A stretch of DNA of 64,000 nucleotides from Klebsormidium nitens (GCA_000708835.1 DF237023.1:173654-237653); one strand, 5' to 3'; numbered from the stretch's first letter, positions 26,516-49,663 are shown. Program-made: numbers and translations. The notes: a model not told the origin generated them from the letters alone.

Positions 26516-29500
26516 ATGGCCCCCCGGACCGCCGCGCTCCTGCTGGCCCTCTTCGCAGGGCTGGCCGTCGCCTCCGCGCTCAAAGTCGTCGAGATCGCGC
26601 CCGAAGTCTATGTCGAGCAGGTCGACGGCCCCGCGTTTAGGGCTTTCGCTGCAACTCCTGCCACTAGCTGCCAGCTGTGCGACCAGTCCAACAACTGCTA
26701 CCCCAACGCCTTCACGCCTCAGGTGACGAGCCTCACCTGCGGCGGCGCCTGCGGCGCGACATGCACGTCCACGTGCGCGTTCAGCACCCCGCAACAGGCC
26801 ACCTTGCCCAATGGGCAAGTGGTCTTCGTCGTTTACTGCGGCTGCCAAGGGGGTAAGCCTGACATGAACGGGTTGCGTTCGAGTGCCTCTTCCCTGCATG
26901 TATGTCGTGTGAGGTTGTGAAAGAGCGCTGTGGTTTGTTGTTGGCGGAGGCCTAGCGCAGACCCCTCAGCTGAGAGCCGACTCGTAGCGCTGCAGTCTTC
27001 ATGGGGGGTTGTAGGGGGATGTGGTAGAGCTGTGAGCATCATCAGAGCTGAAACGCGGTAGAGCAAAGGGGATTCACAGGGAGGTGCCCCCTCCCCTATG
27101 ATAGTCACCTCTTAAGAGCTGCAAATGAGCTGGGGCTCGCTGATTCGAGCGCTGAGCTGGCACTTTGGTGGGGGCTGGAATGCAAGGGAACAAAGCAATG
27201 CGAGACTGCTTAGCTTCGGCTACAACACTCTCTTGGTGTTCAAGTGGAAGCGCTAGCAGGCTAGTGCTAAGTGGCCTGGGCCTCCATGACTTGTGAGCGC
27301 AAGGGGCAGTTCTATTCTTGGGAACATGAGAGCCAGGGGCCGGATGACGACCTCTAAGGGCACTTATCTTTTCTCCCATCTTGAAAGCTGTCTTTGTATG
27401 CGTATGGTTCTAATTCTCCCCCCAATGGCTGACAGCACAGCCCCCTGGTAGCTTTCAAATCATGTCGACATCTCAAGCGGATGGAGCGCTGACACGTGTC
27501 TCCTTCTTCCCTGCTGCAGCCGATGACTTTGGCGGCTGCGGCGACCCTCACTTTGTGGGAAACAACGGCGTGGAGTACGACTTCCACGGTGTTGGAGGTG
27601 TGTTGCCCCTTCCACCATTCTTTCAGCAGATGCAACCCAGGTCCAGGTTCTGGGTTTCTCGGCAGGTGGTGTCAGGTGGCAAACTGAATAGGCACTCTAA
27701 AGTGGGCCTTCAAGAGAAAAGTTGAGCAATTGGAGGGGGTTCATTCCATTGCTGCAAATTCGAGAGATACCACTATTGTCCACATTTCCGTCACGAGCAT
27801 TCCTTGGGATAAGTATTGGAGACTTTTGCCCGGAGACTTTTGCCCTTTTCACTTATACGTGCACTTCTCCCAGAGACACGCAATGAGGCACTTCTCGAGA
27901 TGTGTACATAAGTTTCAGATGTCGTCATAAGACTGAAGTTGCCTGACCACTGCCCTTTTTTGGCTAAGTTACTGAGCATATATACTCCTCCTTCCCATCC
28001 TGGACGTGTATCACAACACTGCCCAGAGGGCTCTACTCGTCGCACAGACCCAATAATACTTTTGTACAGACAAGGTCACAGGCCCACTGTAAAGCACAGG
28101 GCACTGGATTTCCTCTTCAAGAGTAGTTTGCCCCCTTATGTACTGTGCCCCTTCCCAGTTTTATCGAGCTCGAGTGAGCCTGAACGTTTACTGACGAGTC
28201 TCGATTGCCCTGATTGCCCTGATTCGAAATCCTGATTGCCCTGTTCATTTAGAATCTCAGTGCAGCATTAACCATCTCCAACTTGTGCTAACCCGCTCTC
28301 TGACCCAATCCGTGCTGCAGGCCGTGAGTATTTCTGAGTCCTCCTTGCCCTGAATCATCAGATCCCCAATGCTAAGCTCTTTCTAAGCAGCATAAGCGAT
28401 CTCCAGCTAAAGCTAACCCGCTCCCTAACCCGTGCTGCAGGCAAGGAGTACTCTATCATCTCCGACCTGGACTTCGCTTTGACCGCCCACATGATTGGCC
28501 AGGAAAGCGAGAACACCGGCTTCGAAGGCACCTGGATGTCCCAGCTCGGCTTCATGTACAACCACGAGGGGGCTACCCACAACGTGTCCATTGCTCTTCA
28601 AGAGGTGAGATCCGCGACTGCCCCCTGCATTGCCCGCGCTCAGCAAACTTTGCTGACCTTTTTGTGTCGTGTTCATCAGGTGCGATGCGAGGTGTGCTTC
28701 TCATGGTCCCGTGCTCCATAGCGGCTGCTGCCCTTCTTTCTTTCATTCTCATCAGGGTGTTTTGCGAGATGTCAGAATGCAAAGGCTTGTTCGTTGTGTC
28801 CTGCGTGCAGTCCGTCTGGTCCAAACCCCCTGTTCCTGCATTCATTTTTGCGTCCAGATTGTCTTCGCTCGCCGGCCTTCCTTATTCCTCTCTTCGATCT
28901 CACGTTCTCATGTCTGCATTGCCGAGCTGAAGCTCGGTTTCGTGACCCCGACCTTCTTTTCTCATGTCTGCATTGCTGAGCTAATGTTTCTCGGTCTCCT
29001 ATTCCGTTCTTTTTCTTGTTCGCTTACTCATCCTTTAGTCCCCCATCTCTGGAGTTCATGCTTGATATCGTTTCTCAGTCTCTGCCTCAGGCTCCTTGTC
29101 CGTCTTCCTTTCGTTCGTCGACCCTTCCCCAATTCTTCCCCCCGTCTTCTCGTCGTGCTTCCTTCCCATTGGCTGACCCTTTTCCCCAACTCTCTTCTCC
29201 ACCGTTCCCTTTGGCTGACCCTTTTCCCCAACTCTCTCCTTCACCAGACTGAGGACCGTGCTACCACCTCGGACGTCGCCGTTGCGTCCTTCGACGGCGA
29301 GATTGTCGACCTCTCATCCCCCCTCGACAAGTCCGGCCTTACCCTCTCCCTCGAGAACGGCGCTTTCCACGTCAGCATCGACGGCCACGTGGAGGCACGT
29401 GTCACCATCGCCGACCACAAGTTCCCCGACGGCTTCCACCTGGACTTCACCATCAAGTCACTACACGTAACTCGTAAGTGCCCGCCCTGTTTTTCTGCTT

Positions 29501-30296
29501 TCGGATCCGGTTCATAGGCTCAGAGCTCGTTTGAGCAGAAGTTGGCACATCTGAACACCTTGTTTGTTTTCTCAAAGTTGTGCATTTTTAGAGCTTCGAC
29601 TTTGATCCATTTGAAGATCGTGTTCTGTTGATTATAATCAGAACGCGTGCACATTCAGGACTCCCGACTTTCTTCAATCTGAAGATCGTGTTCTGTTTCA
29701 GAGCATGAAGTCAAAGCTGCTTCAGGCCCACAATCTTCAGCAGCTCTCCCTGCTTCACAGACCAGCACTTTTTTGAAACCCCCCTTTCCCCTTTGCTACT
29801 GGCCCCAAATCAAACCCGAACTAAACCCGTCAGGAGATATCAAACCCGTCAGGAGATCTCCACTTCGAAGTCCCTTGTCCCACGTAAAACCTCAATTGGC
29901 TGCGGTATCGCTTATCGTCGGGCATAACTTCGACTCGGATTGTTTTCAAACTCGCATTGCTGACGCCGAAACCCGTCTTCTGCAGCCACTGTGCACGGTG
30001 TGTTGGGCCAGACCTTCCAGCTGTCTCGGGCCGAGAGCCTCAAGGCGTTTGCCGATGCCGCCGCCGCGGCCGTTGGCACTACCAAGGCTTACTCCGACAG
30101 CGACATCGTTGACGGTGCCGACGCCGACTACGAAATCTCTAACCTCTTCGCGACCGACTTCAAGTACAACCGGTTCGTTGCCCCGGGCGCGGCCTTTGTG
30201 AGCGCGGGCCGGAAGCTGCTGGCGGTCCCGGTACAGACCGCCGAGGTACCGTTCGTGGTTAACTGGGCTGGCAGCTCCATGCGGATCCAGTTCTAG
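26516..30296 (+). CDS. Secreted Cys-rich Root_cap (VWD-like) domain protein, copy 1
   Basis: Five phase-consistent exons: 26516-26852, 27520-27597, 28441-28604, 29248-29473, 29986-30296. Signal peptide MAPRTAALLLALFAGLAVASA, a 9-Cys region, then CGDPHFVGNNGVEYDFHG, IISD..LTAHMIG, GTWMSQLG, VHGVLGQTF, YEISNLFATDFKYNRF (Root_cap signature). Confidence 0.88.
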
Positions 30297-31433
30297 ATAG
30301 TTAACCTAACCTAGGAGGTTTTCTATTCTTGTAGCAGAGTCACTCTCACTCGGGAGATACCCCCGGTGCTTAAAATCGCGCCCAAGCCTCTGATTCGGTT
30401 TCTTCGGGTCCTGCCTTGGATCTTTGGGTTAGGACATTGTAGTTAGGAGCATAAACCAGTCAAAAGACTGGGGCTGACGACATCCTGTTCGGTGCTGGAC
30501 GGATATCGTGGTCGGTAATAGACACAGTAGATTGCAAAGGACAACGTAGGAACGTTCATCCACTCGGATCGTTAATCAATCTCAGCATCTGTACTGTTGT
30601 AAACAGCCGCGCGACTTGTAAACAAGCAACAATGTGAGTACTGCCTTCAAATGAGGGATTTAACGACAGGAACTCAATCCTCTCGTTATATCCCTATTCT
30701 TTAAAAGGGGTACATCGTGTGGTAAAAATCACTGCGTGCGCGACATATGATCAGCCCTTCAATCGTCCTGTGCATAAATCTAGGACTTTTTCCCGCGTAT
30801 TTGTTCTGGAGTATGCACACACTTCGTTTGCCCATCTCGCCGGCATATCATGATCAACATAGTTGCGTGCACAAAAGCAATCGAGTACTCGAATGAAAAG
30901 CCACATGAAAAGCTTCGACGGCCGCCGTCGCCGCCGGTATGTGCGTGCCCGGACGATATCTGGCAATGAAAGTAATAACCGCAAGTGTGCTTGAGCAATG
31001 TTTGTGTGCATGGAGAAACACCGTCAACTCGCGAAGGAAAGCGGTCTTCCATGCGAGAGGCATTTGGAGATTCAAGGCCGTGACGGCTCCCTTCAGTCAA
31101 TCTGGCGACAATCCGTCACGCCACATTCCGGCGACAATCCGTCACGCCACATGCACTGCGCACAGCCCAAGTGATCCTGACCTTCATAATAGCGGCGAAG
31201 CTCTTGGCCATTAATTTTTCCGGGAGCATGCACATCAACCACTTTCCAGACGCGTTCACATCCAAGCGCTCACGGAAAAGCCAGCCCGCGCTTGCTGCAT
31301 CTCATAGTAGGGCTGGCTTGCTGCATCTCATAGTAGAGGTAAAGAACCACAATTCGGTAATATAGCATCTGCGTCTTCACATCGCCCTACCTTGATGAGG
31401 TAAGTAAAAGCTGCGCAATGCTGCTGCTGGTGG

Positions 31434-31661
31434 CTTTCGCGTTTTGCTCACCTCGCACACTGACATTTCGATAAGGAACAATTGCTCCATCGAAGAACGC
31501 CTTTTCGAAAGGAGCAGCCGGACCATGAGAAGCCTGAGAATGTTTCATTGCCTTTCGCGTTTTGCTCACATCGCACATTCTGATAAGAAACAATTGCTCC
31601 ATCGAAAATCGCACTATCGAGAGGAGCAGCCGGACCATGAGAAGCCTGAGAATGTTTCATT
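31434..31661. repeat. Diverged ~115-bp tandem duplication
   Basis: Copies at 31434-31549 and 31552-31661 share ctttcgcgttttgctcac, acaattgctccatcgaa and an identical ggagcagccggaccatgagaagcctgagaatgtttcatt. Confidence 0.85.
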
Positions 31662-34600
31662 CCGTCGGAAACCGGCATCTGGGAACGAGCTTGCACTCAG
31701 AATGATGACAATCAACGGTCCGCAGCTGTTTTCTGTGACGCCTTCCGAGTTTGGCGTTGAGGGCTATGATCCTGGAAACGAGACGACGAGATTTATTGGA
31801 GAAGTGCGAAGCGCGCACGGCCTCCAGGCAGACAACGATCCTAAGAGGAGCAATCTGTCGGGCGACTCTCTTGCGTGCCCGGTCGTTTGCCACGCGCTGA
31901 ACGCTAGCCGCCCGTGGCTTCAAGAGCAAAACGGGACTATGAACCAGAGATGTTTACATAGTCGATCTGGCGGAATCTGAGTCTATCGAGAGCGGAAACC
32001 TGACTATGCAGGGACTTTTCGAAACATAAATTTGGCGGAATCCAGATCCATCAAGAACGGAAACGTGACTATGAACCAGGGACGTTGGCAGTACTTGTCA
32101 AGGAACTTCTGTTGGAATCCAAATCCATCTAGCGATGGCCTCATGCATGAGCTGACAACGCATGATCGTGAGAAACTCTGGGGAGAAGCAGAAGGAAAGT
32201 GCAGCTACACATCCCCTGGTGGAAATCGAGCAATTGAGGATGAGACGCGGAATCGGAAAAAAGCCACCGAGCACCCGGGACACTGTACATGGGAAGGACC
32301 TTCCCGCTTGCCGATCTCCGGCCCAACAAACTGACTGTCATCAAAGTAACCACCAGATTGAGATTTCAACGGAGACTTTTCGCATGAAAGGTTAAAAGGT
32401 ACGTCGTAGCCGCTGCTTACCACCGAAACTCGGGCTGAGCGGAGAGCTGGTTGACAGCAAAAGTGACGAACAAAGCTCAATATGCTTCATTGACTAGTAC
32501 AAAAGAGACGGAGTATATAAGAGTTGTGCTCGATCATTGCCGCTTTCGTTAAAAGTGGGGAACGATTCAAGAACGATACAGGTTTGCAAACCCGCAATTG
32601 TCTGTGTTCGTGCTCAATCAGAGGCAGAATCTTCGGAGTCGAGCAAACACACGAGGTGGGATTCGTGGGCGCATTGCGAAGTACGCAAAGCTTTTCAGAT
32701 CATGAGACAATCGGTTGACTCGGACGCAAGAATGATCTATTAAGCCCAGCCCACTGGCAGTAACCTTTCGATCCGTTTAGACGTAGCCGTAATTTGGGCT
32801 CCCATGAAGCAGGCTAAAACCAATTTGCAGAGCTCACGCGGATCGCTCAACACACCTCTGTCAAAGCTGATTGTTTGCTGAGAGGCTGTACCAAGAATCT
32901 CTTCCGGTCTCTTCGTCTCTTCAGCAAGAAGCCTCCAAGGCAGAGAAAGCAACCAAGGATCCAACGGGCAAACCTGGTTGCTGGCCGCTCTATGGCCCCA
33001 TCCCATTCTTCGTCATCGATTTGACAGGTGGAGATTCTGTGCCCGACTGACTGTCCGTAGGTCCGTGTCATCGTCCAAGAAGCTGTGCCCGCGTCTTGAT
33101 TGGTTTCGAAATTGGTCAGTCGCACAATTAAGCAGAGGCCGCTGTGCTGCTTCCAGCTTTAACGGTGACCCTTGGAGAGCTCTACTCGAGCGTCGCCAAC
33201 ACAGATTCTCAGTACGGAGGGTTGCATCTCCCCAAAGCTAGGAAACGGATTGCGCGAGCAAACCTTGGGCGTAGCTGGTTCAGCTTCCTCTCAATCGCCT
33301 CAGTTCCCTTCGTTTGCGGCAGCCATAAAAAAATTGCTCAGGCCCTCGAATGGCGTCAGCACCCGGTCGAGCATAATCCAGATACCTGAGGGATCAAAGG
33401 TGGTCCGAAACGTATGTGCTTTCATACCCCTGAAATCGTGCAGGTCTCGTGCAGAGAACACATCGTGGACGGATTTGCTCAGAACAGCCTGGGTCAAGAC
33501 AAACTGCCTGAAACGGCCGGCTGCGTGCAATCTGTTTGTTCAGAGCTCATGCGGGAGCTCCACCCTCTGGCTCCGTTGTCAAGTCCACCCGGCCTTGCGT
33601 TTTACTATAAACGCACTCTGAAAACCCAACTTCATCAAACATATCTTCGGGGTGCAAGAAAGAGGGTCGGCAGAGAAAAGAAGGCAGTTTTGCGTCAGGG
33701 CTCTGTTAAAGCGTTTCAGACGTCAAAAGCAATTTGTAACTCTTGTCTCCGAGTCGCCCCTTCCGGCAAACCCAGCTAGCTCCGAGGCCCCCGAGCGGAG
33801 GCGATACACGTCCTTGTCCGCCCTGCCAGTAAGTCTGCTTTGATAAGCGGTACAAGTCAAAGTTCTACCGTTGATGTTTGTTTCAGAAGGTCTGACAGTC
33901 TTGAGAAGCGAAGTATTTGCAGAAGTGAGGATATCAAAGCCCAAGAAACCTGCAAACTATGATGGTGGGTGATTGAGAGTGAACCTCAGAGCTTATTGCA
34001 ATCAGCTTCGATTTCAGGGGAAGTCCAGCCCTTCTGATGGACACGTCACTTCTGATGGCCCTTCGACTGCACAATTCAAGTCTCGACTCCTTCAACTGCT
34101 GTCGCAAGAGCGCCCAAAGAGCGCGCTCTTTCAATCGTCGTCGGAACATGTTGCCAGTGAGCCCCGTGCTACGGAAGGACTTGCAAACATTGGCCGAAAG
34201 TTCGAAGCAGAAACAGACGATTGCTTATAGGCGGATACAGAAGGGGCGTGCATTGCTTGACTTTTTCTCGTCTTTCCTCCTCTTCGTTTCTTCCGTTTCC
34301 TTCGAGAATGGAAAATGCTTGCATCCTGGTCGTATCGGTCTAAAGACTAAAAGATGGTTTGCGTTCTCCAATCTGGCATCCTTCCTGATCTCCAATGGCT
34401 TTCGTGCCTCTTCGGATCTTCCCCGAAGAAGCTGGCATTGACACGCTCCTTCCCAGACCCGCTCTAGGAAGGATGGATTTGCTGTAAACGAGTACGTAGT
34501 CTGGTCTTTTACACCCTTGACAAGACAATCCATGTCAATCGGTACTATCGGGCCGCTACATGAGAGCTTCTAGGAGCTGTTCACATCTCGCCCGTTCAAG

Positions 34601-37600: not shown

Positions 37601-37760
37601 AACCGTTGGACGTTCTGAAAGACTGGCAATTTGTAGCTTGCTTACAGCTCCAGTTCGTCAGATCATCCTACTTCTTTTGGTGCTTCGAGCTTTCGTATCA
37701 TCTTAGTGCTACTTTTGGTCCGTTCATCAACTACAGCGAGAGTTTCTTGCCCCATGCACG

Positions 37761-38735
37761 ATGGCTGGACCTGGAGATGATCACTCTGCTCAGGAGACCA
37801 CTGGGATGACTCCAGAGGACTTTGCGAAGCAGGCCAGGGAAGCAACCCTCCGCAACGAAGCTCTATTTTCCAAGATCTCCCAGCAGCTGTCTGAGCATGC
37901 AACACAACAAGCCGCACATCTGGCCAAGCAGTCCGAGAAGATTGATCAACTGCAGTCCCAGATCCAAGCCAAGACTGCTCCAAAGAGATCTGATCGCATT
38001 GGGAATCCTGAGGTGAAGAAGCACATGGAGCCGTTGGAACAGGCACAGCATGTCATCTCTCAGGCGAAGTCTGTCTTCGAGGATCATCTGGATGGAACTT
38101 CGCCCCTGTCTCAGCTCTCGGAAGATCAAGTCGCTGCCCTCAAGAATCAGTGCGATGAAGGTGAGAGAGCCATTTCTGACCGCATGCAGTTTCTTGAGGA
38201 CTGGGATTCAGAGGGGCTGGAGATTGCGTCTGAGATGCTGCGTCTGAGGGATGAGGCATCCAAGGACCCCGCAGAACTGAACCTGGTTTCTCGTGCTCGG
38301 AAATCCCTGGCTGAAAAACGCAAGGCTTCAGAGGAAGCATCCAAACCTCCCAAGGAACACAAAACTCAACAGTACCAAAACCCTAGCAGAGGCAACTTCC
38401 AGAACAGAGGCCGCTCTCCCTCTCCGTCTCCGTGGTTCCATCCTCCTCAGCCTATCCTGATGCCTGCTCCCCTGCCAGTTCTCCCACAGCCAAGCCCTGT
38501 CCCATCTCCCATCTACCAGAGCCAGTATTTCCCTTCCAACCGCACCCCCTCTCCTGCTCCTGGCCTCCCCCCTCCTGCTATTCCTGCCCCTGTTCCTCGC
38601 GCCCCAAGCCCCTCCATGACTAGTGGTCGCATAGCAAACCTCCAGTGCTGGTCTTGCCAACAGTATGGACACGTGGCAGCAACTTGCCCTAACTCAGCTA
38701 GCATAGCAGCCAACGCTAGTCGAGGTTACTTCTAG
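37761..38735 (+). CDS. DIRS gag-like ORF1 (324 aa): coiled-coil N-terminus, Pro-rich linker, CCHC zinc knuckle
   Basis: ATG at 37761, TAG at 38735; CWSCQQYGHVAATC fits CX2CX4HX4C. Confidence 0.85.
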   Translation: MAGPGDDHSAQETTGMTPEDFAKQAREATLRNEALFSKISQQLSEHATQQAAHLAKQSEKIDQLQSQIQAKTAPKRSDRIGNPEVKKHMEPLEQAQHVISQAKSVFEDHLDGTSPLSQLSEDQVAALKNQCDEGERAISDRMQFLEDWDSEGLEIASEMLRLRDEASKDPAELNLVSRARKSLAEKRKASEEASKPPKEHKTQQYQNPSRGNFQNRGRSPSPSPWFHPPQPILMPAPLPVLPQPSPVPSPIYQSQYFPSNRTPSPAPGLPPPAIPAPVPRAPSPSMTSGRIANLQCWSCQQYGHVAATCPNSASIAANASRGYF

Positions 38736-40130
38736 ATCTCAGCGCTTCGGTAGTCATGACACAAACCGAGTAATCAGTCGAGTTCTGTTCCTAAGTGCTT
38801 GTGGAGAGTTAGCTGCCAGAACATTGAGGGTTTGAAGTGAGCAGAAGACTTTATAGGGTACCTTTGAACAGATGTACTTGTAATGGTCCAGACCTTCAGT
38901 GTAATACTTAGAGCTGCGGATGAGGCAATGCCTAGAACACCACTGTAACATTTGCATCGTTTCACCCTGATTGTATTAAGCTCTCCACCACATTTCAACT
39001 CTCATTGCTTGCATCGTCTTTTCAATCTCTTCGCCTCGTCATAGCCAATGATTCTTCTGTTCTTATTTCCCCTTCAATGCTTGCATTACTCCCCATTCTA
39101 GTTTTCGTTCTGACTCTATGAGGCTGCTAAAACTTACTATAGGATTCTTTTGGCATGTCCTGAAGGCTGATATCTTTGTTCCTTCTTTTCAATCTCACCT
39201 CCTTCGCTTCTTCAGTGGTTTCCATCCCTTCCGTTCCGTTCACATTCCGCTCAACCGCTCTGGCTTTCCGTTCGCAAGGTGCCTCGAGTCCCTTTAAAAC
39301 CAATTTCCTCCCTTGTTTCATCGCTTTTCGTAATTCGTTCAGTCGAAGTTGATGTTCGTATCCTGCATTTGTTTTATCAATCTTTAAACAATTCTGTTTA
39401 TGTCCGTTCCTGTTTCTCCGTTCCGTTATTTTCTCCGTTCCGTTTACGTTCCGTTGATGTTGACGTTATCGTTCCGTTGCAGATTTTTCTTTGACGATTA
39501 GTATCAATCTTCAGTCCGTTCAATTTCCAAACACTTCCCAGCTTCAGGGGGATACCTCGTTCTTGTTTTCCGGTTACAGTTTCTTTTCTCATCCCTTTCC
39601 GATTTCGAGTTCGTTCCGTTCACGTTGAACGTTTCTTCCGATTTTCACCCCGCTCTAGTTCGTCCGTTTTCTGCCCGATTTTCTTCAGTGTCTTCGTTTC
39701 AGTCGGCGTCAACCTTGTCGCTGTCGTTGCTATAGACAGACTTTCCGGTTTCACCAGTTCTCTCTTCTCTGCTTTTCACGCCCCGGTTTTTGCTCCTCTA
39801 GTTTAAATAAGCGCTGCCACGTGGCAGGCTGTGATTCGTGCTATTTGGGAAGCAACGTTTGCTCCCAATTGTTGTACCCATATCGATCGAACCTGAGCCG
39901 CTTGCGTATCTCGTCTTCTTTGGCAGCGCTTCGTGTCCCTCGTCGTTAGAAGGAGAAATTTTGCTCGGTTTCCATCTTTCATTTGTCCTGCCTCGGAGAG
40001 GATGCTCTCTTGAGAGTTTCATCCCATAGTCTGAATCTATCCTGGCTGATCCGAGGCCCGTTCAAGCTTCTTCTGTGTTTCTATTTTGTGATTCCCGTTC
40101 TCATGTTTCGGTTCTCTTCCTTTCTTTCCG

Positions 40131-42233
40131 TTGTTTGCAGCCACTGAGGAGTCTTTGCACAAACTCGCCGACTTGACTGATGCCGCCGAATTTGAGGGGT
40201 TCCGCGATCCGGCTAAGAACGCGGCTGCGAAGGAGTCCGCCCCCAAGCGCGAGCCCTACCTGCGTCACAGGCTCCGCCGTCATGTCGAGTTCTGGCAGTC
40301 CTTCGTCACCTCTAGCTTTGTGATGGGAATTCTGCTGTCTGGCTATATGCTGCCTTGGTTATCTGGCCCCCCAACTGAGCCTCACCGCTTTCCTAACCAT
40401 CCGTCAGCCTTCGAGCATGCCAGCTTCGTCACGGATGCCGTCAGCAGCCTCGCCGCGACCGGCACAATTCAGCCTGTTTCCGACCCCCCCTTCCTAGTTA
40501 GTCCTCTAGGAGTCGTACCTAAGGCGGAAGACAAGCTGCGCCTCATCTTGGATCTTCGTTTTCTCAATCAATTTCTTCAAATTACGAAATTCAAGGACGA
40601 GTCGATCAGGATGATCTCGGAGCTGTGCCTGCCCAAGGACCTCCTGTTCACCATCGACCTCAAGGCGGGGTACCACCACATCGACATCTTCGAGCCGCAC
40701 TGGAAGTACTTAGGCTTCCAGTGGCGGGGCCAGTATTACGTTTTTACACAACTTCCTTTCGGTCTGGCGCCTGCGTGCTACGTTTTCACGATGGTGATGC
40801 GCCAACTCACCAAGTCCTGGCGCGCTCGCGGGTATTGTCTAGTTCATTACATTGACGACTTCTTTTTTGCCTGCCGAAGCTCGGCCGAGTTTGCCCGCGT
40901 CCAGGCGTGCGTACTTGCAGATCTTGCGGCTGCTGGCTTTGTGGTTTCTAAGGAGAAATGCCAACTCAAGAGCAGCCACGTGGTGAAGTTTCTTGGTTTC
41001 GTAGTGGACACCCTGTTCGGTCATTTTCGCCTGACAGCGCTGCAAAAGAGCAAGCTGCACTCCGCCATCGAGGCGTGCTTCCGCAACCCCCGGTCCGTCC
41101 CTGCGAAAACCGTCGCTCGCGTTACAGGCCTGATTACCTCCCTCTTGCTAGTTACAGGGCCTATCTCGGGTCTCTTCTCGCGCTTCTTGCATCGAGCCTT
41201 AGCTACTCGCTCTTCCTGGTACAGCAAAGTGCAGCTCGATAGCGCAGCTTTAGGCGAGCTTCTTTTCTGGAAGGACCGGCTTCCTCGCTTTGAAAGCCGT
41301 GACATCTGGCGTAAGCACTCCGTGCTTCGCGTTCTGTTTTACGACGCCGGCGGTCAAGGTTGGGGCGGGCATTTGGAGATTGGCTCTGAGCAGCACGAGG
41401 CGCACGGTTCCTGGGAGGCACACGAGGTGCATGGCGTGGCTTCGTCCACGTGGCGGGAGCTGTCTGGTCTTCTCCGGTTGCTTCGCGCTTTTCGACCTCT
41501 CCTAATCGATTGCACAGTCATCGCGCGCGGCGACGCGCTGAACGTCTTCTCTATCCTGTCCAAGGGCGGTTCTGCTAAGGAGCATTTGCAATCAATCTGC
41601 ATCGAGCTTTTTGCGTTCTGTTCCGGGCAGCGGATCGAGCTTCGACCGGAATGGCTGCCGAGAGAGGAGAACGCGCGCGCGGACTACTTGAGCAAAGTTC
41701 GTGATGTTGACGACTTCGGGCTTTTTGCGGAGGCTTTTGCTTTTGTTTCAGCGCGTTTTGGTCCGTTTACGGTCGATCGGTTCGCCAGCGAGCACAATGC
41801 AAAGCTCCCTAGATTCGACGCGTCTTACTGGTGTCCCGGCGCGGCGGCCGCGAACACTTTCATCCAGGATTGGGGTGGCGAAGAGAGAAACTATTGTTTC
41901 CCTCCACCGAATCTCGTCGCTCCGACGCTTCGGCACGCGCGCGCGTGCCGCGCGCGCATGACGCTCATTGTGCTCAGCTGGCGCTCTGCTCCGTGGTGGC
42001 CGCTCCTGTGCGGCAGCGTGGACTCCGGCCGGGGGTTCGCACCGTTCGTTCGGCAGCAGCTCTACTTTCCTGCGGGGCGCGAGGTCCTGGTCCCCGGTCG
42101 TGCGTTGCGTGACCGGTTCTTTGGGAAAGGCGTTCCCATTTCCGACGTGTTCGCACTTGACATCGACTTCCGCGCTCAGGTTAGCGTCCTTTTGTCGTCG
42201 CTCAGTCTTTCCTATTCTTATTCCTTTGCTTAA
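40131..42233 (+). CDS. DIRS pol: reverse transcriptase + RNase H + DAM-methyltransferase-like domain (5' end probably supplied by splicing at 40141)
   Basis: RT: SPLGVVPK..KLRLILDLRFLN, TIDLKAGYHHI, LPFGLAPA, HYIDDFF, KFLGFVVD. RNase H: YDAGGQGWGG, SSTWRELSG, GDALN, WLPREENARADYLSK. MT-like: FTVDRFASEHNAKLPRF..WCPGAAAANTFIQDW..NYCFPP..W..APWWPLL. Confidence 0.93.
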   Translation: MFAATEESLHKLADLTDAAEFEGFRDPAKNAAAKESAPKREPYLRHRLRRHVEFWQSFVTSSFVMGILLSGYMLPWLSGPPTEPHRFPNHPSAFEHASFVTDAVSSLAATGTIQPVSDPPFLVSPLGVVPKAEDKLRLILDLRFLNQFLQITKFKDESIRMISELCLPKDLLFTIDLKAGYHHIDIFEPHWKYLGFQWRGQYYVFTQLPFGLAPACYVFTMVMRQLTKSWRARGYCLVHYIDDFFFACRSSAEFARVQACVLADLAAAGFVVSKEKCQLKSSHVVKFLGFVVDTLFGHFRLTALQKSKLHSAIEACFRNPRSVPAKTVARVTGLITSLLLVTGPISGLFSRFLHRALATRSSWYSKVQLDSAALGELLFWKDRLPRFESRDIWRKHSVLRVLFYDAGGQGWGGHLEIGSEQHEAHGSWEAHEVHGVASSTWRELSGLLRLLRAFRPLLIDCTVIARGDALNVFSILSKGGSAKEHLQSICIELFAFCSGQRIELRPEWLPREENARADYLSKVRDVDDFGLFAEAFAFVSARFGPFTVDRFASEHNAKLPRFDASYWCPGAAAANTFIQDWGGEERNYCFPPPNLVAPTLRHARACRARMTLIVLSWRSAPWWPLLCGSVDSGRGFAPFVRQQLYFPAGREVLVPGRALRDRFFGKGVPISDVFALDIDFRAQVSVLLSSLSLSYSYSFA

Positions 42234-42243
42234 ATTTTTGCAG

Positions 42244-43313
42244 ATTGGTTTAACTTTGAAAGCTGGGACCTCCACGCGGCCGGTCTGCCGTCCGCCGACC
42301 CGGAACTTGCCAGACTGTCTGTCGATCTTCACGATGCCGCCCTGCTTTGCCGCGCTGCCTCCACGTTTCGTACCTACTCTGGGCCCTGGAAACATTACAA
42401 GCAGTGGTGCCAAAAGAAGGGGGTCCCCGCTTTGCCTTCCAGCCCCTTGACAGTCGCGCTCTACATGATGCGGCTTCTCCGCACCGCCAACACTCCTTCT
42501 CCTTTGATGACGTTCTCTGGCGCAGTGTACCTGAATCACTCACTTGCTGGCCTTCCGTCCCCGACGAACCACCCTCTCGTTCAAATGGCACGCGAGACGG
42601 CCCGCCGGATCAAAGTTGCTGGTAAAAACCAGAAAAGGCCGTTTCTCGCTTCACAAATCCGTCGCCTTTTTGAGCTTTGGGGTAGTTTTTCAGCCAACCT
42701 CCACCAACTTATGAAGCTTACTGCCATCACCCTTTGCTACACATCATTCCTGCGTTACGACGACCTGGTTGCAATTCCCTGGCAGTCTATCAAGTTCGTC
42801 GCTCAGTCCCACATGGAGCTCTTCATTCCGGACAGCAAAACCGACCAGTACCGCAGGGGCGAGACGATTTACATCGCTCGCTTGGGTGGTCCATTCTGTC
42901 CCGTCAGCTTAGTCCAACGCTTGCTCGAGGTCGGCCAGTACCGCCTTTTTGGCAACGGTTCCCTGATTCGCTCAACGCTGATTTTCCCTCCTAGCCAGCG
43001 CATCAAGTCTACCGCACCGTGCTATTCTACCGTTCTTGCTTGGTTCAAGGAGGCAGCTTTTGTTTCCGGTCTCGATCCTCAGTACTATGGCACCCACTCG
43101 GGCAGACGCGGCGGCGCAACTGGCGCCGCTGCTAACGACGTCCCTGATCGCCTTTTCAAGGGCCACGGCCGCTGGCGCTCTGAACGTGCAAAGGACATGT
43201 ACGTGAAGGAGAAGCTTCAGGCGAAACTTTCAGTGACCCGGAACCTTGGCCTTCAGGAAGATATTCCCATTGCCCAACTCCGCGAGTTTGAGCGCGAAGC
43301 CTGTTTGATCTGA
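42244..43313 (+). CDS. DIRS tyrosine recombinase (N-terminal SAM-like domain + catalytic domain)
   Basis: The frame is open from 42234. N-domain RAASTFRTYSGPWKHYKQWC..LPSSPLTVALYM; catalytic residues FLRYDD (R), SKTDQYRRG (K), THSGRRGGAT (H..R), GRWRS..KDMY (W, Y). The first ATG, at 42465, is inside the domain. Confidence 0.92.
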
Positions 43314-44058
43314 TACTGTTGTTGTTGCATCTCAGGTACGCCCTAGTCCTCTTCTTTATTTCATTCCTTCTTGTTTTCCTGCTTCCTTCCACCTTCCTCA
43401 TTTCCCATAACCTCCTCTTAACCTCACTCTAAACCCTTTCCGTGCTGCTGTGTTCTGTGACGCCTTGCACGAGCCACTTGCCAAACCTCGTGCTTCATCA
43501 CATCTCACTGTCATTCGCTGCAGTGCACTTGCAGTGCACTGCTGCTCATTCGCAAGTTCTCGTTTATAGCAGAGAACCTGGAATTCGAGTGTGGAGTCGG
43601 AGTCAGTGTGACGGTCCAGGGGTTCTGGCGGGGCGCCAAACGGGGCGCAGAGCGCCCCCGGGCAGATCCTGGCGCCCCAGGGCGGCAGCCCGGGGCGCCA
43701 GAGCGCCCCGGCCCGAAGCCCCGAGGAACTATCTGGCCTGGGCAGGGCGGCCGGCCGCGCCCCAGGGTCGCGGCTGGGCACCCCGGGCCGGAGCCCCGAG
43801 GCGCCAAAGCGCCTCCGGGCAAAATCCTGCTAGAAGAGTAGCCACGGTACGCCGTACGGTACTCCTAGTCGGCTGGCTGGCTGGCCAGCGCCTTGTCGCC
43901 ACTAGCGAACCATATCTGCAGAGTGCATAATGCAGCTGCACCTGCCTGGGAAATTTGCCTGTCTGCGAAATAACCTTCAACCTTCGAAGTTCGCGATTCA
44001 CCGGGCACCTACTCGATCTCAATTTCAGGTTGACTTACCGTATATGAATTGATGGCAA

Positions 44059-44243
44059 ATGTTCACATTTATCATTGACTTGTGGACAGTGCTCGGGGAC
44101 AAGAACAAAACCAGAACCCTCAACCCAGAATTAACAAGCTCCACGGTGAGTCCACACCCGTACCCACCCTAACCCCCAAAGTTCAAACCAACCAGACCTG
44201 TCTCCCGGGCGTCCTCCTTGATAAACAACTTGATTGAACATGG
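44059..44243. mobile_element. Diverged second copy of the 11744-11933 MITE-like element, inverted orientation
   Basis: Its reverse complement contains ggttggtttg..gggggttagggtgggtacgggtgtgga and ttttgttcttgtccccgagcactgtcc. These match ggttggtttgggggttaggttgggtacgggtgcgga and ttttgtgtttcccccgagcacagtcc in copy 1. The TIRs are degraded. Confidence 0.65.
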
Positions 44244-45386
44244 AGCCACGAAGCCTGTTTCTTTGTCTCTCGAATACCTATCACCAGGTTCCTCGGGAGG
44301 GCCTGAAAACAGCTACCGGTCCGTCTAGGCCGACTCATGAGCTAGAGAGCAAGACTTGGTATTCTCTCCCGGAACTTCCGAACACAATCCAGGAGTGAAA
44401 ACCGTGCATGTCAGATTCCTGTTTTAGCTAGCAGGTACCGTGAACCGAAGCGTTCATGACTGCCAGCCTGCATGCCGGGCACAGGCTGGCGGGAGAGCTT
44501 TGAGAGTCGACCCTGCGTTTTAGGACGGCTGGCCAGGGGGCTCGAGCCTGCCTGGGTCTACCTACATAGGCGACTGGCCTGTCTAGGCTCTACCTACCGG
44601 TATTTGCGGATAAGCACAGAACCTACTAGTACTAGGCTATAAAGCAGCAGAAGCTAGCTACGTATAGGTAGTACGACGCCGTTTCTACTACGGTACAAAT
44701 AAAAACAATCTACCGTACCTACCTAGGACCTAACGTAGACTGTAGTACCGGTATTATACGGTTAGGTAGGTACAACAAATTAGGTAGGTACCGTCTTAGT
44801 GCCCACTGCCTTGGTTCTTAGCTCCGCCGCCGTTCGCCTGCATGGGGTATTATGGGGGGCGACTGGGCAGCGCTGAGCGGGCAAGTCAGCGTGGATGTCG
44901 TCAGCGTGCGAACAAAATGTCGCCAGAAAACATATGCATAACGACACGGCATGATGCCTGAGCAGTACGTGAGGATGAGCAGTGCCGAATGCTGAGGCGG
45001 CGGCGTTTTAGCCCTCCGAACAGCTTTCAATATATATGATCAACCACGGCCAACTTGCCGGAGGAGAGCTTTCAGTACGCTTTCAGTAGGGCTGCAGATT
45101 GCTTATGAGCAATGTTCACAAAGCAGCTGGACGCAGCTAGTATGCGCAGCGTTAAGCATTACCAGCCTGTAACTGCGCCTTACATGCCATAGAGTGACTT
45201 GATGACGTAATAGTAAGGCTATAGCTGCAGTCACGGACATTCAAGACGCTCTTGCACAATTGGTACAAAGGAGCTGAGTTCGTCGCACCACCCGTCATTT
45301 CTCACTTCTCAAACTTTCTCAAGTGCTCCTCCAGCTACAGCCCACCATCGCACCAAATCAGCTGAAAGCGCCACTGGCAGCCAGCT

Positions 45387-48300
45387 ATGAAACCCGCCCA
45401 CTCTGTGCTCCTCTTCGGGGCCCTCCTCGCTGTTGCCGCAATTGCGGACGCCACCACCACCTGTAGTTCTGGCCGTTCTGGCAGCGGCACGTGCAAATGT
45501 GATGGCAGCGGTTTCGGCGTCCGGGGCAGCTGCAAGACTGAGAACAACTGCAACACCAACAAGAACTTCATTTTTGGAGCGTCTAACACCTGCCAGTGTA
45601 AGTCCGGCTACTATAAGTACAGTTTGACTACTTGCAAAACGTGCAAAGATGCGGCGCATACCTCCAAGACAACTTCATCATGCACACCGCCAGTAACCTG
45701 CCCCAGTGGCCACAGAGACGGGGGGTCAGGCAAGTGCACGTGCAACTCCAATATCCCCGCCGAATTGAGGACCTCGAAGGACACTTGCAAGTGCAAATTG
45801 GGCCAAGGGAGCACCGGTGTCTGCGGCGACCCGGTAAGCAATCTTACCGCCTTTATTTTGCTGTTGTCTTTGGTCCTGATTGGTGCAAGTCTGCTCAAGC
45901 ATTGCCTTGCCAGTCAACCTCTGATAAGGTGTCCCTTGTCAAGGGGATTTTTGCCAAAATATGGTATGAAGCAACAATAGGTGCACTTGGTGGCTTGGTG
46001 GCCAGAACTGCCAGTAAAAGGAAAAGCTGGGCTGCAGCTAAGCACTCATGCAGGCACACAGCTTTGGAGCACACCCAGCTGATTGAGTAGGTTTCACAAG
46101 TTCTAAAGCGAAAGGCGCTTCCTTTGTTTGGGATGCAGAGCTGTGTCCTTTCGTCTCTAAGTTCTTTCTGCCAGCTTGGTTGTTGACAAATGCACTCGCC
46201 GCTCCTTTGCAGCATTTCATCGGAGGCAATGGCGTCAGGTACGACTTCCACGGTGAGTACTCAGCAGCTCCTTTCTTCTTCAAGGGTTGTTGTCTAGTAG
46301 ACACGCACACGCTTTGACAGTAGGCTGCAGTCAGAGACCGGAAGTCTGTCAGCCAGCTGTCCTCGCGAATACTGGTACAAGGCTTTACATATATCACCTT
46401 GAATGAAATGTTACTCTGCTTGTACACATAATTCGGTCGAATCAACTTTTCTGCTGGGGTGTGAGACCAAGCATCCCTCAGATTCTGTTTGAGAGCCTTT
46501 CAGCAGACCTGTGTTATGTGAACACTTGCCTTCTAATACGGCCTCCTCACGTGTTTGCTCCGTCACAGGATGCGAAGTCCAGGGTTGTCCACACTTTGAC
46601 GAATTATTGACCAGGCAGCTCACAGTCTTCCCCTTCTTCTGCAGGTGTCCCTGAGAAGTCCTTCTGCCTCATTTCCGACAAGGCCTTCCACCTGAACGCT
46701 CACTTCATCGGCCAAAACGGCCTAGAGACTGGCATGGACGGCACCTGGATGGACCAGCTTGGATTTGTCTTCGTGTCTGGCAGCAAGCAGCACTCCCTCT
46801 CCGTGCACCTTGTCTCTGTAAGTTCCCTACCTGCAAATTGCAAACTACATGAAGTGATCTCTATGAGAGGGATACATACTTGGAAATCAAAGCTCTCTTG
46901 GGTTTGTACCCCTCTCCTGCTTGCTTCAAAATGAGGGTCAGGCAAGACGAGATTATATGCTAGTGGATGCCAATCCAAGCATACAACACATGGTGATCTA
47001 CAAATTTTGCTGCTTGCTTCCTCAAAATGTGCTCTCTCAAGTGCATGCCTCTGCATGCTTTTCAAAACACCATCTTTTAGAAGCCTGAATCAGCAGTACT
47101 TTTCTTCCTCTCTTCTTCTGATTGCCTCCGACTGTCTACATATGTGACGGCCCTGCCAATCCTCCCCCAGAACAGAGCGCCTGACTTTGTTCACAAAGCA
47201 ACTGACCTTTACTCCTCCTTTGCTGTCCAGGAGGAGGACTTCGCCAACGAGGTTTCAGACGTCTTCGTGGTGGCTTACGACTCTTCTCCCATCACTGTCA
47301 GCCTCCCCACCAGCGGCAAGAACGTGTGGACGTCCGATGACGGCCTTGTGACCATCTCTCGGACGTCCGAGGTGGCCAGGCTGACCCTGACGCTCAAGGG
47401 CCACTTCCAGACGACTCTTACCGCCAGCGAGCACGAGTTCCCTGACGGTCACCACATCGACTTCGATGTTGACGTCATGAACATCACCAGTACGTTATCT
47501 CACCCAAAAACACACGCCAGAGTATTATTGCCATTCTGGTGACTTCTCTAGGCTTGCAGAATCTTCAGTTCCTTCGTTTGCCGCGCTTCGCTCTTCAGTA
47601 GGTCCGTTAGTCCTTCCGAAACCGGCTAGCCATGAAACGGCTATCTGCAAGGGTTGGGAGTGCTGTAGCAAAAGAAATGTTTGCAAGCAATTTCCAACCT
47701 CTGCTCAAGAGCGCCTGCCTCGATCCTTTTCTCCTTGTTTCGGTGGCTCGCTTTCCTGGCCCCTCACTCGCTTTCCGCTGGCCTCTCTCGCTCACTTCTC
47801 TTATTCCATATACTCAAAGTACTGTTCCCTTTTCTTGCAGACTCTGCTCATGGCATCCTGGGGCAGACCTTCCAGCCGGAGCGCCTCCACGTGGTTGCTG
47901 GCAGCGCCGAGAAGAAGATGGACCAGGCCGACGTTGTCGAGGGCGGCGATCACGGTGAGCCCTCCGTTCCACGTGTGTCGCCAGTTGTTGGAATAACAGA
48001 ACAGATGAAAACAAGGCCTTTATGTCAACTGTGGCTCACAGCCTCGCATGGTGCCGTCTGAATTTGGACAAGACTGGCGCTACATACGTATGCAATCTTT
48101 TCGCCTTTGTGCGCTGGTGAGGAGTTTTCTTACGTTCTCTGGTTGAAGACCTTTTTTAAGAAGCTTTGGACCAGGCATCAGGCTCTGCAAAGCCGATCAG
48201 CGAGCTCTAAGCAAGAACGCCAGGTCGCAAGGGCGTGTCTAGAGCTTAAGGAGGCTCCCTCTCTCTTTGACGCTGGTCGAGAAGCCCTGTCTTGCGTCAC

Positions 48301-48644
48301 CACCTTGAAACAGAAAGCAACGTGATGATGAGCGGACTCTTTCTGACCTTCTGTTGCTCTATTCATGTCCGCACTTTCTGCTATCATCTCTCTTCGCTGA
48401 TTCTAATGTTTGTGCTCCATTGGAATCCCCGAGAGGAAGAAGACTTATACAAGCTCTCGCTTCCTATGCAGACTACATCTCCACCAACCTGATGGCCACT
48501 GACTGCAAGTTTTCCCGGTACTCTGCCCCGAGCCTCATCACCCTCACCCGCCGCCTGATGGGAGGAGCCCGGTTGGAGGAGCCCGTCTACTCCCACTCCC
48601 TCAGCTGCGCCAGCGACGCCGGCTATGTCAGCTGCATGATTTAA
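45387..48644 (+). CDS. Secreted Cys-rich Root_cap (VWD-like) domain protein, copy 2
   Basis: Six phase-consistent exons: 45387-45833, 46213-46252, 46645-46817, 47231-47489, 47841-47954, 48472-48644. Signal peptide, 16-Cys N-terminal region, CGDP|HFIGGNGVRYDFHG, SFCLISDKAFHLNAHFIG, GTWMDQLG, AHGILGQTF, YISTNLMATDCKFSRY. Confidence 0.9.
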
Positions 48645-49663
48645 TGTCGAGCTCGTTCGAAAAGTTGTTGTTGAGTAACGTTGTTGGGTTGCCTTTGAGT
48701 CGTCATTTGTGATGTTTAAGCAGAAAGCTTAGGGGGGGATTCTCAAACCTCACGAGCTTAGGTGGATCAATCTTGGCTTTTCAGGTGGTCACAGAAGCAT
48801 GGAATTAATCAGAAACCGGATGAACTTTCTAAAGTACATCGCAGATCGACTTGTAAGTAGATTACTTGTCATATAGCGTACAGATAGATGGAAACCTTCC
48901 TAGATGTCGTCAAAGAAATCTGCAGAATTTGCCAGATGACGAGGTATCAAGGTACCTCAAAAGGTCCTGTAAACAAAGCGTGTGCCGGTGACTTTAGATT
49001 GGTTAAGATTTGGGTGATTTCTTGTTGAATTAGGCGACCTGATCATTCCGTGTCAGAAAAGTGGGTGCTTAATCATGGCGTGAATACCTTGTGTACATGG
49101 AAAGCATTAGAATTGACTGGTCTTTTAGGATGGTATCATCATGTCGTGCATGCAAATTTCAGGACTCATGGTCACACTGTTGTGTCGTGCAAACGGGCAT
49201 CGGGCATGCAACTTAGCACTGCAGGACAATTTTGACTGCGTGAAATATTAAGGCCGTCTTAAGGACAAGTGATTCCCAATAAGTAGTACTAATGCAGGTG
49301 CAAATCTCATTGTAGATAATGATATGTAGATTCTCGCTGTAGATATGCAGATTCGGCGACTCGCCGGACTCAAGGTGCACATATCTGACGATCAAAGCTT
49401 GCAGCTTCTAACAAAGTTCGGACACGGCTAGCTTCAGGTAGGTAAATTGTCTTCGTGCAGTCAGTAACTCATGTGTCTTATGAGAAAGCGGCCCGCTACA
49501 TTATGGGTCATGCATCCGACTCATGAGCTTCAGGAATGATGTGCTAAGTGCAAACGCAGATCTTACATGCTTCCGATGATTTCACTGCATCTTTGGCTAT
49601 ACTGAAGATGTGTGGCCGCAGGGCAGCGCACGCTTTGTTAAGTGTTTGCCAGGTCAGGGACGA

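Follow-up and report, generated by a model that had tools for sequence, protein, structure and literature searches.

Two genes of the rootless green alga Klebsormidium nitens, found in a window of 64,000 nucleotides (GCA_000708835.1 DF237023.1:173654-237653; all positions below are counted from the first letter of this window), encode secreted-type proteins whose conserved domain opens with the residues Gly-Asp-Pro-His (GDPH), the motif at which animal proteins such as mucins, FCGBP and RGM cleave their own chains. Gene 1 occupies 26516-30296 and gene 2 occupies 45387-48644, both on the plus strand. By homology both products are members of the Root_cap/DPH family, and the structural and bacterial comparisons described below support the classification of their root-cap/DPH domain as a divergent member of the VWD domains. 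Self-cleavage of the two proteins during secretion seems to be their most likely behaviour, and we would put its probability at roughly 0.55. A first-pass annotation of the same DNA had read the string CGDPHF.G.NGV.YDFHG in both genes and had delimited the pair by positions 26516 and 48644. The string holds in the exon 2 reading of gene 1 and in a spliced contig of gene 2, and the two positions are the start ATG of gene 1 and the stop TAA of gene 2.

Two genes with a complete GDPH motif

A degenerate search of the window for the pattern C-G-D-P-H-F (TGYGGNGAYCCNCAYTT) found a single site, at 27537-27553 on the plus strand, with 0.00 sites expected from shuffled sequences. This is the motif of gene 1, whose motif exon translates as CGDPHFVGNNGVEYDFHG, a reading also given as GGCGDPHFVGNNGVEYDFHG and DDFGGCGDPHFVGNNGVEYDFHG. 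The motif of gene 2 is split in the DNA: exon 1 ends with ...TGC GGC GAC CCG|gtaagc at 45833, a phase-0 intron of 379 bases follows, and exon 2 begins at 46213 with ttgcag|CAT TTC ATC GGA GGC AAT GGC GTC AGG TAC GAC TTC CAC G, the spliced product being CGDP|HFIGGNGVRYDFHG.

Evidence of splicing was drawn from contigs of four public runs (X1, X2, X5 and X6, from four studies with four organism labels) over positions 45300-48700; their identity to the window is at least 99% for one organism label and 90-99% for the three others. The joint 45833|46213 (GT..AG), which lies inside the GDPH codons, is carried exactly by one contig of run X6. The joints 46817|47231, 47489|47841 and 47954|48472 are each present in two or three runs (the first of them in three), and the joint between exons 2 and 3 is uncovered. 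Because the run contigs carry its exon joints, gene 2 is transcribed and spliced as modelled, the exon 2-3 joint excepted.

Membership of the Root_cap family, proposed by the first-pass annotation, holds up through homology to recognised members across the whole domain of ~260 residues. Sequence searches with the window genes were run exon by exon. Against Pfam Root_cap, exon 5 of gene 1 alone reached 24.6 bits (E 2.8e-5) over model positions 11-48 of 57; it narrowly misses the gathering score of 27 because the start of the model falls in the preceding exon. Exon 5 of gene 2 gave a weak match of 12.6 bits, and the six K. nitens proteins named 'Root cap family protein' in UniProt likewise remain below 27 bits (best E 7e-5). 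Using phmmer, gene 1 exon 5 matched two full-length K. nitens Root cap family proteins (E 4.3e-6 and 5.2e-6), fragments from related algae (E 6.7e-11 to 1.1e-8) and a bacterial protein, P0007 (E 1.3e-6); two further entries, P0010 and P0011, were rejected as low-complexity or repeat artefacts. Word-index searches added four more K. nitens paralogues, six in total, and these six 'Root cap family' proteins are the closest full-length relatives of genes 1 and 2. The exons of the two genes can all be aligned to K. nitens Root cap proteins in their proper order, at 24-60% identity, and the family layout, C-x-D-P-[HR]-F ... Y-D-F-H-G after a signal-type N-terminus and a variable N-part, is present in both. 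With Root_cap/DPH proteins in general they have in common the signal peptide, the variable N-part, a beta-sandwich starting from DP[H/R]F and the C-terminal HG.LGQT segment, whereas the gene 1 lineage differs in having no Cys in the whole domain and no C-terminal Cys pair.

The residue preceding DPH distinguishes the window genes from their K. nitens paralogues, all six of which read C[A/S]DPHF.GA.G..YDFHG, with Ala or Ser in place of Gly. Gly is found in gene 1, in gene 2 and in an orthologue of gene 1 located on a metagenome contig of another alga (L001); this orthologue is 57-72% identical to gene 1 and also reads GCGDPHFIGAHGVDFDFHG. Outside the motif exon, genes 1 and 2 are 35-47% identical to each other. 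On these comparisons K. nitens would possess eight root-cap paralogues, with the full GDPH only in the two genes of the window.

Other searches extended the family no further. A query from gene 1 exon 4 (region 198-272 of the open frame 28657-29514) had no match in the word-index protein search, not even to itself, so the window genes are missing from that protein collection (157-500 aa range). Word-index searches with the K. nitens paralogue P0009 and with the K. nitens family alignment returned only K. nitens paralogues and one fragment, with neither of the window genes and no land-plant or zygnematophyte sequence among them, and 0 of the 205 pattern matches from a metagenome scan with the family alignment were confirmed.

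The N-termini of the two proteins, MAPRTAALLLALFAGLAVASA and MKPAHSVLLFGALLAVAAIADA, are hydrophobic, have AxA-type ends and are of signal type by inspection. What follows is rich in Cys, as had been claimed, with 10 Cys in gene 1 and 16 in gene 2 ahead of the Asp-Pro bond; after the bond there are 0 and 4, respectively. These N-modules had no match in Pfam, and their feature scores in the ESM Atlas were below 0.85.

Similarity to VWD domains

The case for VWD superfamily membership is founded on the fold and on a transitive sequence link through bacteria. The structure modelled was that of P0009 (CADPHF), obtained with AlphaFold2, which stands in for the window proteins. A first model, based on 22 alignment rows, had a mean pLDDT of 56.5 (65-90 in the core), and a second, based on 33 rows with bacterial relatives added, had a pLDDT of 73.7 and a pTM of 0.77. 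The top matches of the P0009 models in Foldseek searches against the PDB were MUC2, RGMB, FCGBP D10, VWF and MUC5AC. In an unbiased VIA-align scan of the first model against 48,161 representative chains, the top 19 were all of VWD type (Z 7.9-11.4), and the next values were 6.7 and 5.0. The VWD-type chains recovered in this way belong to VWF, MUC5B, honey-bee vitellogenin, FCGBP, Cypridina luciferase, MUC2, RGMB, MUC5AC and an insect pigment protein. When the second model was compared by VIA-align with the entries of Foldseek's list, the top 32 were all VWD-type (Z 8.3-12.1, 120-150 residues aligned), and the next entry had a Z of 2.9. Identity in the structural alignments is 7-18%. Because they extend through the HG.LGQT segment, the piece known to Pfam as 'Root_cap' appears to correspond to the end of the VWD sandwich together with a tail.

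The chains of FCGBP D10 (8qci_B) and RGMB (4bq8_C/7ne0_D) are post-cleavage fragments that start at Pro4081 and Pro169, respectively (FCGBP residue numbering from PMC10880436). The structural alignments of P0009 start at D121/P122, which lie opposite P4081 of FCGBP and P169 of RGMB. That the motif sits at the autocatalytic site of VWD domains, as stated in the first-pass annotation, is thus upheld by alignments whose starting point is the residue that follows the broken Asp-Pro bond in each of these fragments. The models support the placement of DPH at the cleaved-GDPH position of the FCGBP and RGMB domains to within one residue, a limit imposed by the low local model confidence. The pattern that follows the site is D-P-H-F-x-G-x-x-G-x-x-Y-D-F-H-G in the algal proteins and ...Y-D-x-Q-G in the bacterial ones. 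At +14 from Asp there is His (F-H-G) in the former and Gln in the latter; counted from residue numbers, this position would correspond to Gln4094 of FCGBP (F-Q-G).

Animal GDPH-type VWD domains (FCGBP D10, 8QCI; RGMB, 4BQ6/4BQ8; MUC2 D4; MUC5AC) resemble the algal domain in their beta-sandwich fold (Z 9-12), in the place of GDPH, in their secreted setting and in the pattern [FY]-x-[GT]-x-[DN]-G-x-x-[YF]-D-F-[HQ]-G after the site. Unlike them, the algal proteins are devoid of C8, TIL and E modules (no Pfam match to C8 or TIL was found in the window exons) and of the usual VWD cysteine framework, having 0 and 4 Cys after the site. They also have Cys instead of Trp directly before Gly and an extra conserved root-cap tail, and in gene 1 the strand ahead of the site is not tethered to the domain by a disulfide.

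Bacterial relatives and ancestry of the motif

A scan of prokaryotic genomes seeded with the repeats of P0007 and the K. nitens domains identified seven loci in metagenome-assembled genomes (MAGs) of Methyloligellaceae, Rhodobacterales/Shimia, another member of the Pseudomonadota, Planctomycetaceae and Pirellulaceae. One of the seven (L003) is P0007's own locus. The others, L004-L009, were confirmed by tblastn with P0007 as the reference; they read [IVH][WY]GDPHF.G.DGG.YD[VI]QG...LSD...NA.F and end with PHGL[LW]GQT...Y.V..LF. GDPH is present in 6/9 aligned distant bacterial domain copies, which come from six proteins and five MAGs.

These sequences connect the algal family to VWD from both sides. 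Three of the loci (L005, L006 and L007) exceed the Pfam VWD gathering score of 22.9 with 24.0, 28.3 and 30.6 bits, and their matches begin at profile position 2, which falls three residues ahead of GDPH. In the other direction, hhalign paired the bacterial alignment with that of the K. nitens family over a stretch of 192 columns between DPHF and FN.F, with E 1.6e-16 and a probability of 98.7%. The whole domain is common to the bacterial GDPHF-type VWD proteins and the algal ones, including ..LSD...NA.F and the PHGL[LW]GQT tail; the bacterial proteins differ in being encoded without introns and in having Trp, not Cys, before Gly and Gln, not His, at +14. The most plausible reading is that the root-cap/DPH domain had GDPH ancestrally. 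The two window genes and the L001 orthologue would have kept it, the six K. nitens paralogues would have reduced it to [A/S]DPH, and land plants would have gone over to DPR.

The bacterial proteins, which come from several phyla, are of varied architecture. Some of the GDPHF proteins are small and secreted-looking (e.g. locus L007:1183-2211), in L004 and L008 the domain is joined to long tandem repeats of extracellular type, and L009 (526-3156) has two copies of the domain with Pro-rich linkers between them. P0007/L003 (contig CBDCYM010000011.1) has three tandem domain copies with LSSF or LSGF in the place of GDPH. Its paralogue L004, in the same Methyloligellaceae MAG, keeps GDPHF, and the function of the site could be studied by comparing these two natural variants.

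Proposed self-cleavage and alternative explanations

We consider self-cleavage the most likely behaviour of the two proteins because all four residues of the motif and a polar residue at +14 are present. Each protein is read as three successive parts: a signal peptide, a fast-evolving disulfide-rich N-module and a root-cap/DPH (VWD-type) domain of ~260 residues. In the proposed scheme Gly would adopt the cis Gly-Asp bond, Asp would be the nucleophile, Pro would provide the labile bond and His would have the part for which it is required in FCGBP. In the course of secretion the Asp side chain would attack its own backbone carbonyl and the Asp-Pro bond would break. The expected products are an N-fragment ending in ...CGD (...GGCGD and ...GVCGD in the two proteins) and a VWD/root-cap fragment starting with PHF..., with the predicted N-termini PHFVGNNGVEYDFHGVGGK (PHFVGNNGV...) for gene 1 and PHFIGGNGVR for gene 2.

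This chemistry is modelled on FCGBP, in which replacement of Asp by Ala or Asn, or of His by Asn, abolishes cleavage and mutants of Q4094 cleave partially (PMC10880436). The cleaved structure of FCGBP has a cis Gly-Asp bond, and according to simulations the Asp carboxylate can get close to its own carbonyl when the bond is in this form, which favours the attack (PMC10880436). Cleavage takes place in the mildly acidic Golgi in the case of MUC2 and at about neutral pH within the endoplasmic reticulum in FCGBP and others (PMC10880436). An acid trigger, as suggested by the first-pass annotation, may consequently be one possibility but is no rule. Regarding the moment, the place and the purpose of cleavage we can only infer, and a role in mucilage or adhesion is purely conjectural.

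The number of Cys is even on each side of the site in both proteins (10/0 and 16/4). Since gene 1 has none after the site, its two fragments would not be linked by a disulfide; they would be held only non-covalently, through the sheet, or would separate. Some cleaving VWD domains likewise have no tethering disulfide (PMC10880436).

Several observations weigh against self-cleavage or against the fold assignment behind it. Pfam VWD matches neither the window exons (E up to 1) nor the K. nitens proteins (E up to 10). Of the two comparisons with VWD put forward by the first-pass annotation, by hidden Markov model and by structure, the structural one thus placed VWD-type chains on top for the P0009 model and the direct one with the Pfam VWD profile failed. 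The algal sequences match no VWD chain of the PDB by HMMER, and HMMER searches of the PDB with profiles of the K. nitens family, of the motif only and of the bacterial relatives gave no significant VWD match (mouse FCGBP had an E of 0.22 on the GDPH stretch). The modelled fold is that of a paralogue, and the window proteins are placed in it by homology; the motif region of the P0009 model has a pLDDT of ~44 and no confident beta-1 strand ahead of the motif. As to cleavage, it has so far been demonstrated for no root-cap/DPH protein. AnIBP, which combines a DUF3494 and a DPH domain and is the only DPH-domain protein observed on a gel, was seen in 2D electrophoresis at ~55 kDa, its full length being predicted as 54.5 kDa, in a spot without mass-spectrometry identification (PMC10796529). 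A recombinant C-terminus of MUC2 stayed uncleaved despite its motif (PMC10880436). Finally, judging from the sequences, the family is able to work without a complete site, since the six K. nitens paralogues have no Gly and land plants have DPR.

The full-length migration of AnIBP and the intact GDPH of recombinant MUC2 are what would be expected under the main rival explanation, in which family and VWD-type fold are the same, the chain remains uncleaved and GDPH is an inherited structural turn, for instance in carbohydrate-binding or oligomerising beta-sandwich proteins of the wall. Most VWD domains (e.g. that of VWF) and most root-cap proteins keep their fold without a complete GDPH, and in gene 1, which has no disulfide tether, cleavage would carry the risk of losing the N-module. 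We regard this explanation as a serious one with a substantial, if minority, chance of being correct. It accounts less well for the presence of all four residues needed in FCGBP, for the retention of the motif in two paralogues whose identity elsewhere is as low as 35-47% and in the orthologue with 57-72% identity, and for its occurrence in 6/9 distant bacterial domain copies. Moreover, Gly is dispensable for the fold, as the K. nitens paralogues have Ala or Ser at this place.

A less probable variant, which we consider rather unlikely, accepts self-cleavage as in the preferred reading and assigns a further step to it, by analogy with the heavy chains of the inter-alpha-inhibitor (ITIH). The DPH domain would act as a pro-domain that cuts itself off, and the new C-terminal Asp of the N-module would form an ester with a hydroxyl of a wall or mucilage polysaccharide. 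In this way the variable cargo at the N-terminus, which consists of Cys-rich modules in the window proteins and of an ice-binding domain in Ancylonema, would be anchored covalently and the VWD/root-cap part released. Inter-alpha-inhibitor heavy chains lose C-terminal pro-domains of 239-244 residues upon C-terminal esterification to chondroitin sulfate (PMC7170535), and ITIH3/5/6 carry GDPH in a VWD-like sandwich (Yeshaya et al., PMC10880436). Clusters of ITI_HC_C and ITIH2 are the nearest neighbours of P0009 outside its own family in the ESM Atlas (features 0.91; TM 0.60 by target), followed by VWD clusters, although such rows are leads only. The layout is also the same, with a variable N-part and a conserved domain of ~260 residues beginning at the scissile bond, and gene 1 has no disulfide between the fragments. 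The ITIH site, D|PHFII, is similar to that of gene 2, D|PHFIG. ITI_HC_C (PF06668) resembles the algal domain in its ~240 residues, its VWD-like sandwich and the GDPH at its start; it differs in its cargo, the heavy chain being VWA-containing and the module here small and Cys-rich. On the other hand, neither the K. nitens proteins nor their bacterial relatives match Pfam ITI_HC_C (E up to 10), and the strong conservation of the root-cap segment after the sandwich would be odd in a discarded pro-domain. To our knowledge, no such protein-polysaccharide ester is known in plants or algae. If this explanation were true, the plant lineage would have a system for anchoring proteins to glycans, later lost or changed in the land plants with DPR.

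Chance or convergence in an unrelated beta-sandwich, which could be argued from the failure of direct HMMER matches and from the 7-18% identity of the structural alignments, is close to refuted by the exclusively VWD-type top 32 structural matches with their fall in Z from 8.3 to 2.9, by the same structural position of the motif and by bacterial intermediates that are above the Pfam VWD threshold and are aligned to the algal family with 98.7% probability.

Significance for the Root_cap family

Root_cap (PF06830) has ~2,000 members across streptophytes, with dozens per grass genome, and a biochemical function is not known for it (10.1101/2024.01.29.577848). The 'DPH domain', comprising the beta-sandwich and the root-cap segment, was described by Prochazkova et al. 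2024 (PMC10796529) and Raymond 2024 (10.1101/2024.01.29.577848), who liken it to small heat-shock proteins and lectins, not to VWD. The contrast between DPH in streptophyte algae and DPR in land plants, mentioned in the first-pass annotation, has likewise been published (10.1101/2024.01.29.577848), and we take it from that source. Full-text literature searches found nothing that ties the root-cap/DPH domain to VWD or to autoproteolysis. The DPH domain and the DPH-to-DPR shift were accordingly known in 2024, and what is new is the lineage and the architecture in which a VWD domain of the GDPH type is now recognised.

If the conserved domain of the family is indeed a VWD domain that started out with a functional GDPH self-cleavage site, the Root_cap family would gain a concrete mechanism that can be tested cheaply. 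The VWD/GDPH module, usually seen as an invention of animal mucus and signalling, would then also belong to bacteria and to the earliest part of the plant lineage. The change from DPH to DPR in land plants could then be read as a possible loss of autoproteolysis, given that His is essential in FCGBP. The window genes are the best natural test objects, because they keep the full motif while the six K. nitens paralogues have lost Gly.

Gene structures and sequence context

Gene 1 has 5 exons and 371 codons (coding 1116 nt); its introns are all GT..AG and the phases are consistent. Exon 1 (26516..26852) contains the start codon, the signal-type N-terminus (26516-26578) and the Cys-rich N-module (9 Cys), and was defined by its open reading frame (ORF) and by reading of the DNA, with the donor GTAAGC in phase 1; it is 44% identical to exon 1 of the L001 orthologue and has the same Cys pattern. 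Exon 2 (27520..27597) encodes (A)DDFGGCGDPHFVGNNGVEYDFHGVG(G), with the GDPH codons at 27540-27551. Strands of the beta-sandwich are encoded by exon 3 (28441..28604; KEYSIISDLDFALTAHMIGQ...GTWMSQLGF) and its second half by exon 4 (29248..29473; …HKFPDGFHLDFTIKSLHVT), both of which align to K. nitens Root cap proteins. Exon 5 (29986..30296), the source of the sub-threshold Pfam Root_cap match and of the phmmer matches, starts with TVHGVLGQTF... and comprises the root-cap segment, the C-terminus and the stop codon.

The donor of gene 1 exon 2 was taken as GAG|GTGTGT at 27598, in preference to 27589, because it restores the 9-residue FHG-SD spacing of gene 2 and the K. nitens proteins. The L001 orthologue has an unambiguous GTGAGC donor at the equivalent place, and the short form of exon 2 with its donor at 27589 was rejected because of the spacing and of this donor. 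Three contigs considered as gene 1 cDNA (L010-L012) turned out to be unspliced genomic DNA of related algae. Intron 3 of gene 1 (28700-29245) is strongly C/T-rich and of low complexity, with short direct repeats (ttccc.ttggctgacccttttccccaactctc twice). It causes a dip in GC/AT skew at 28001-30000 and yields a long spurious open frame (28669-29517) that continues into exon 4.

Gene 2 has 6 exons and 401 codons (coding 1206 nt), again with all introns GT..AG and consistent phases. Its exon 1 (45387..45833) encodes the signal-type N-terminus (45387-45452), followed by a module of 16 Cys in which [TK]CxC units recur, and ends in ...GVCGDP with the G-D-P codons at 45825-45833. Exon 2 (46213..46252) encodes HFIGGNGVRYDFH(G), its first codon (46213-46215) being the His of GDPH, and exon 3 (46645..46817) encodes (G)VPEKSFCLISDKAFHLNAHFIGQ...GTWMDQLGF. 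The remaining exons are defined by spliced contigs: exon 4 (47231..47489) holds the second half of the beta-sandwich, exon 5 (47841..47954) the start of the root-cap segment (SAHGILGQTF...), where the weak Pfam match lies, and exon 6 (48472..48644) (D)YISTNLMATDCKFSRY..., the C-terminal Cys pair and the stop codon. A DPHF on the minus strand at 46928 is a chance match within intron 3. In run X2 a contig over intron 2 (46399-46646; ~92% identity, 19 differences in 248 bases) occurs beside a fully spliced contig of 904 bases, so unspliced RNA or DNA of a related strain must be present in that run.

Intron positions around the motif differ between the paralogues. The motif-adjacent intron of gene 2 (45834-46212) is in phase 0 and splits Pro|His, and that of gene 1 (26853-27519) and the L001 orthologue is in phase 1, seven codons upstream. 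The intron that follows DFHG is offset by three codons between the two genes. Both offsets suggest that introns near the motif exon have slid, or have been gained and lost. The two proteins also differ at a conserved N-glycosylation sequon just before VHG.LGQT, which reads LNVT in K. nitens P0008, P0009 and P0014-P0017 and MNIT in gene 2 (47480-47488); gene 1 (LHVT) and its orthologue (LHAT) have lost it.

Genes 1 and 2 lie on the same strand, 15 kb apart, with a retroelement (37761-43313) in between. Its ORF of 700 residues (40131-42230) combines, in the manner of DIRS elements, a reverse-transcriptase domain (RVT_1, E 4.9e-19) with a DNA methyltransferase domain of Dam type (E 1.4e-6). No Pfam match was obtained for the ORFs on either side of it (37761-38732 and 42432-43310).

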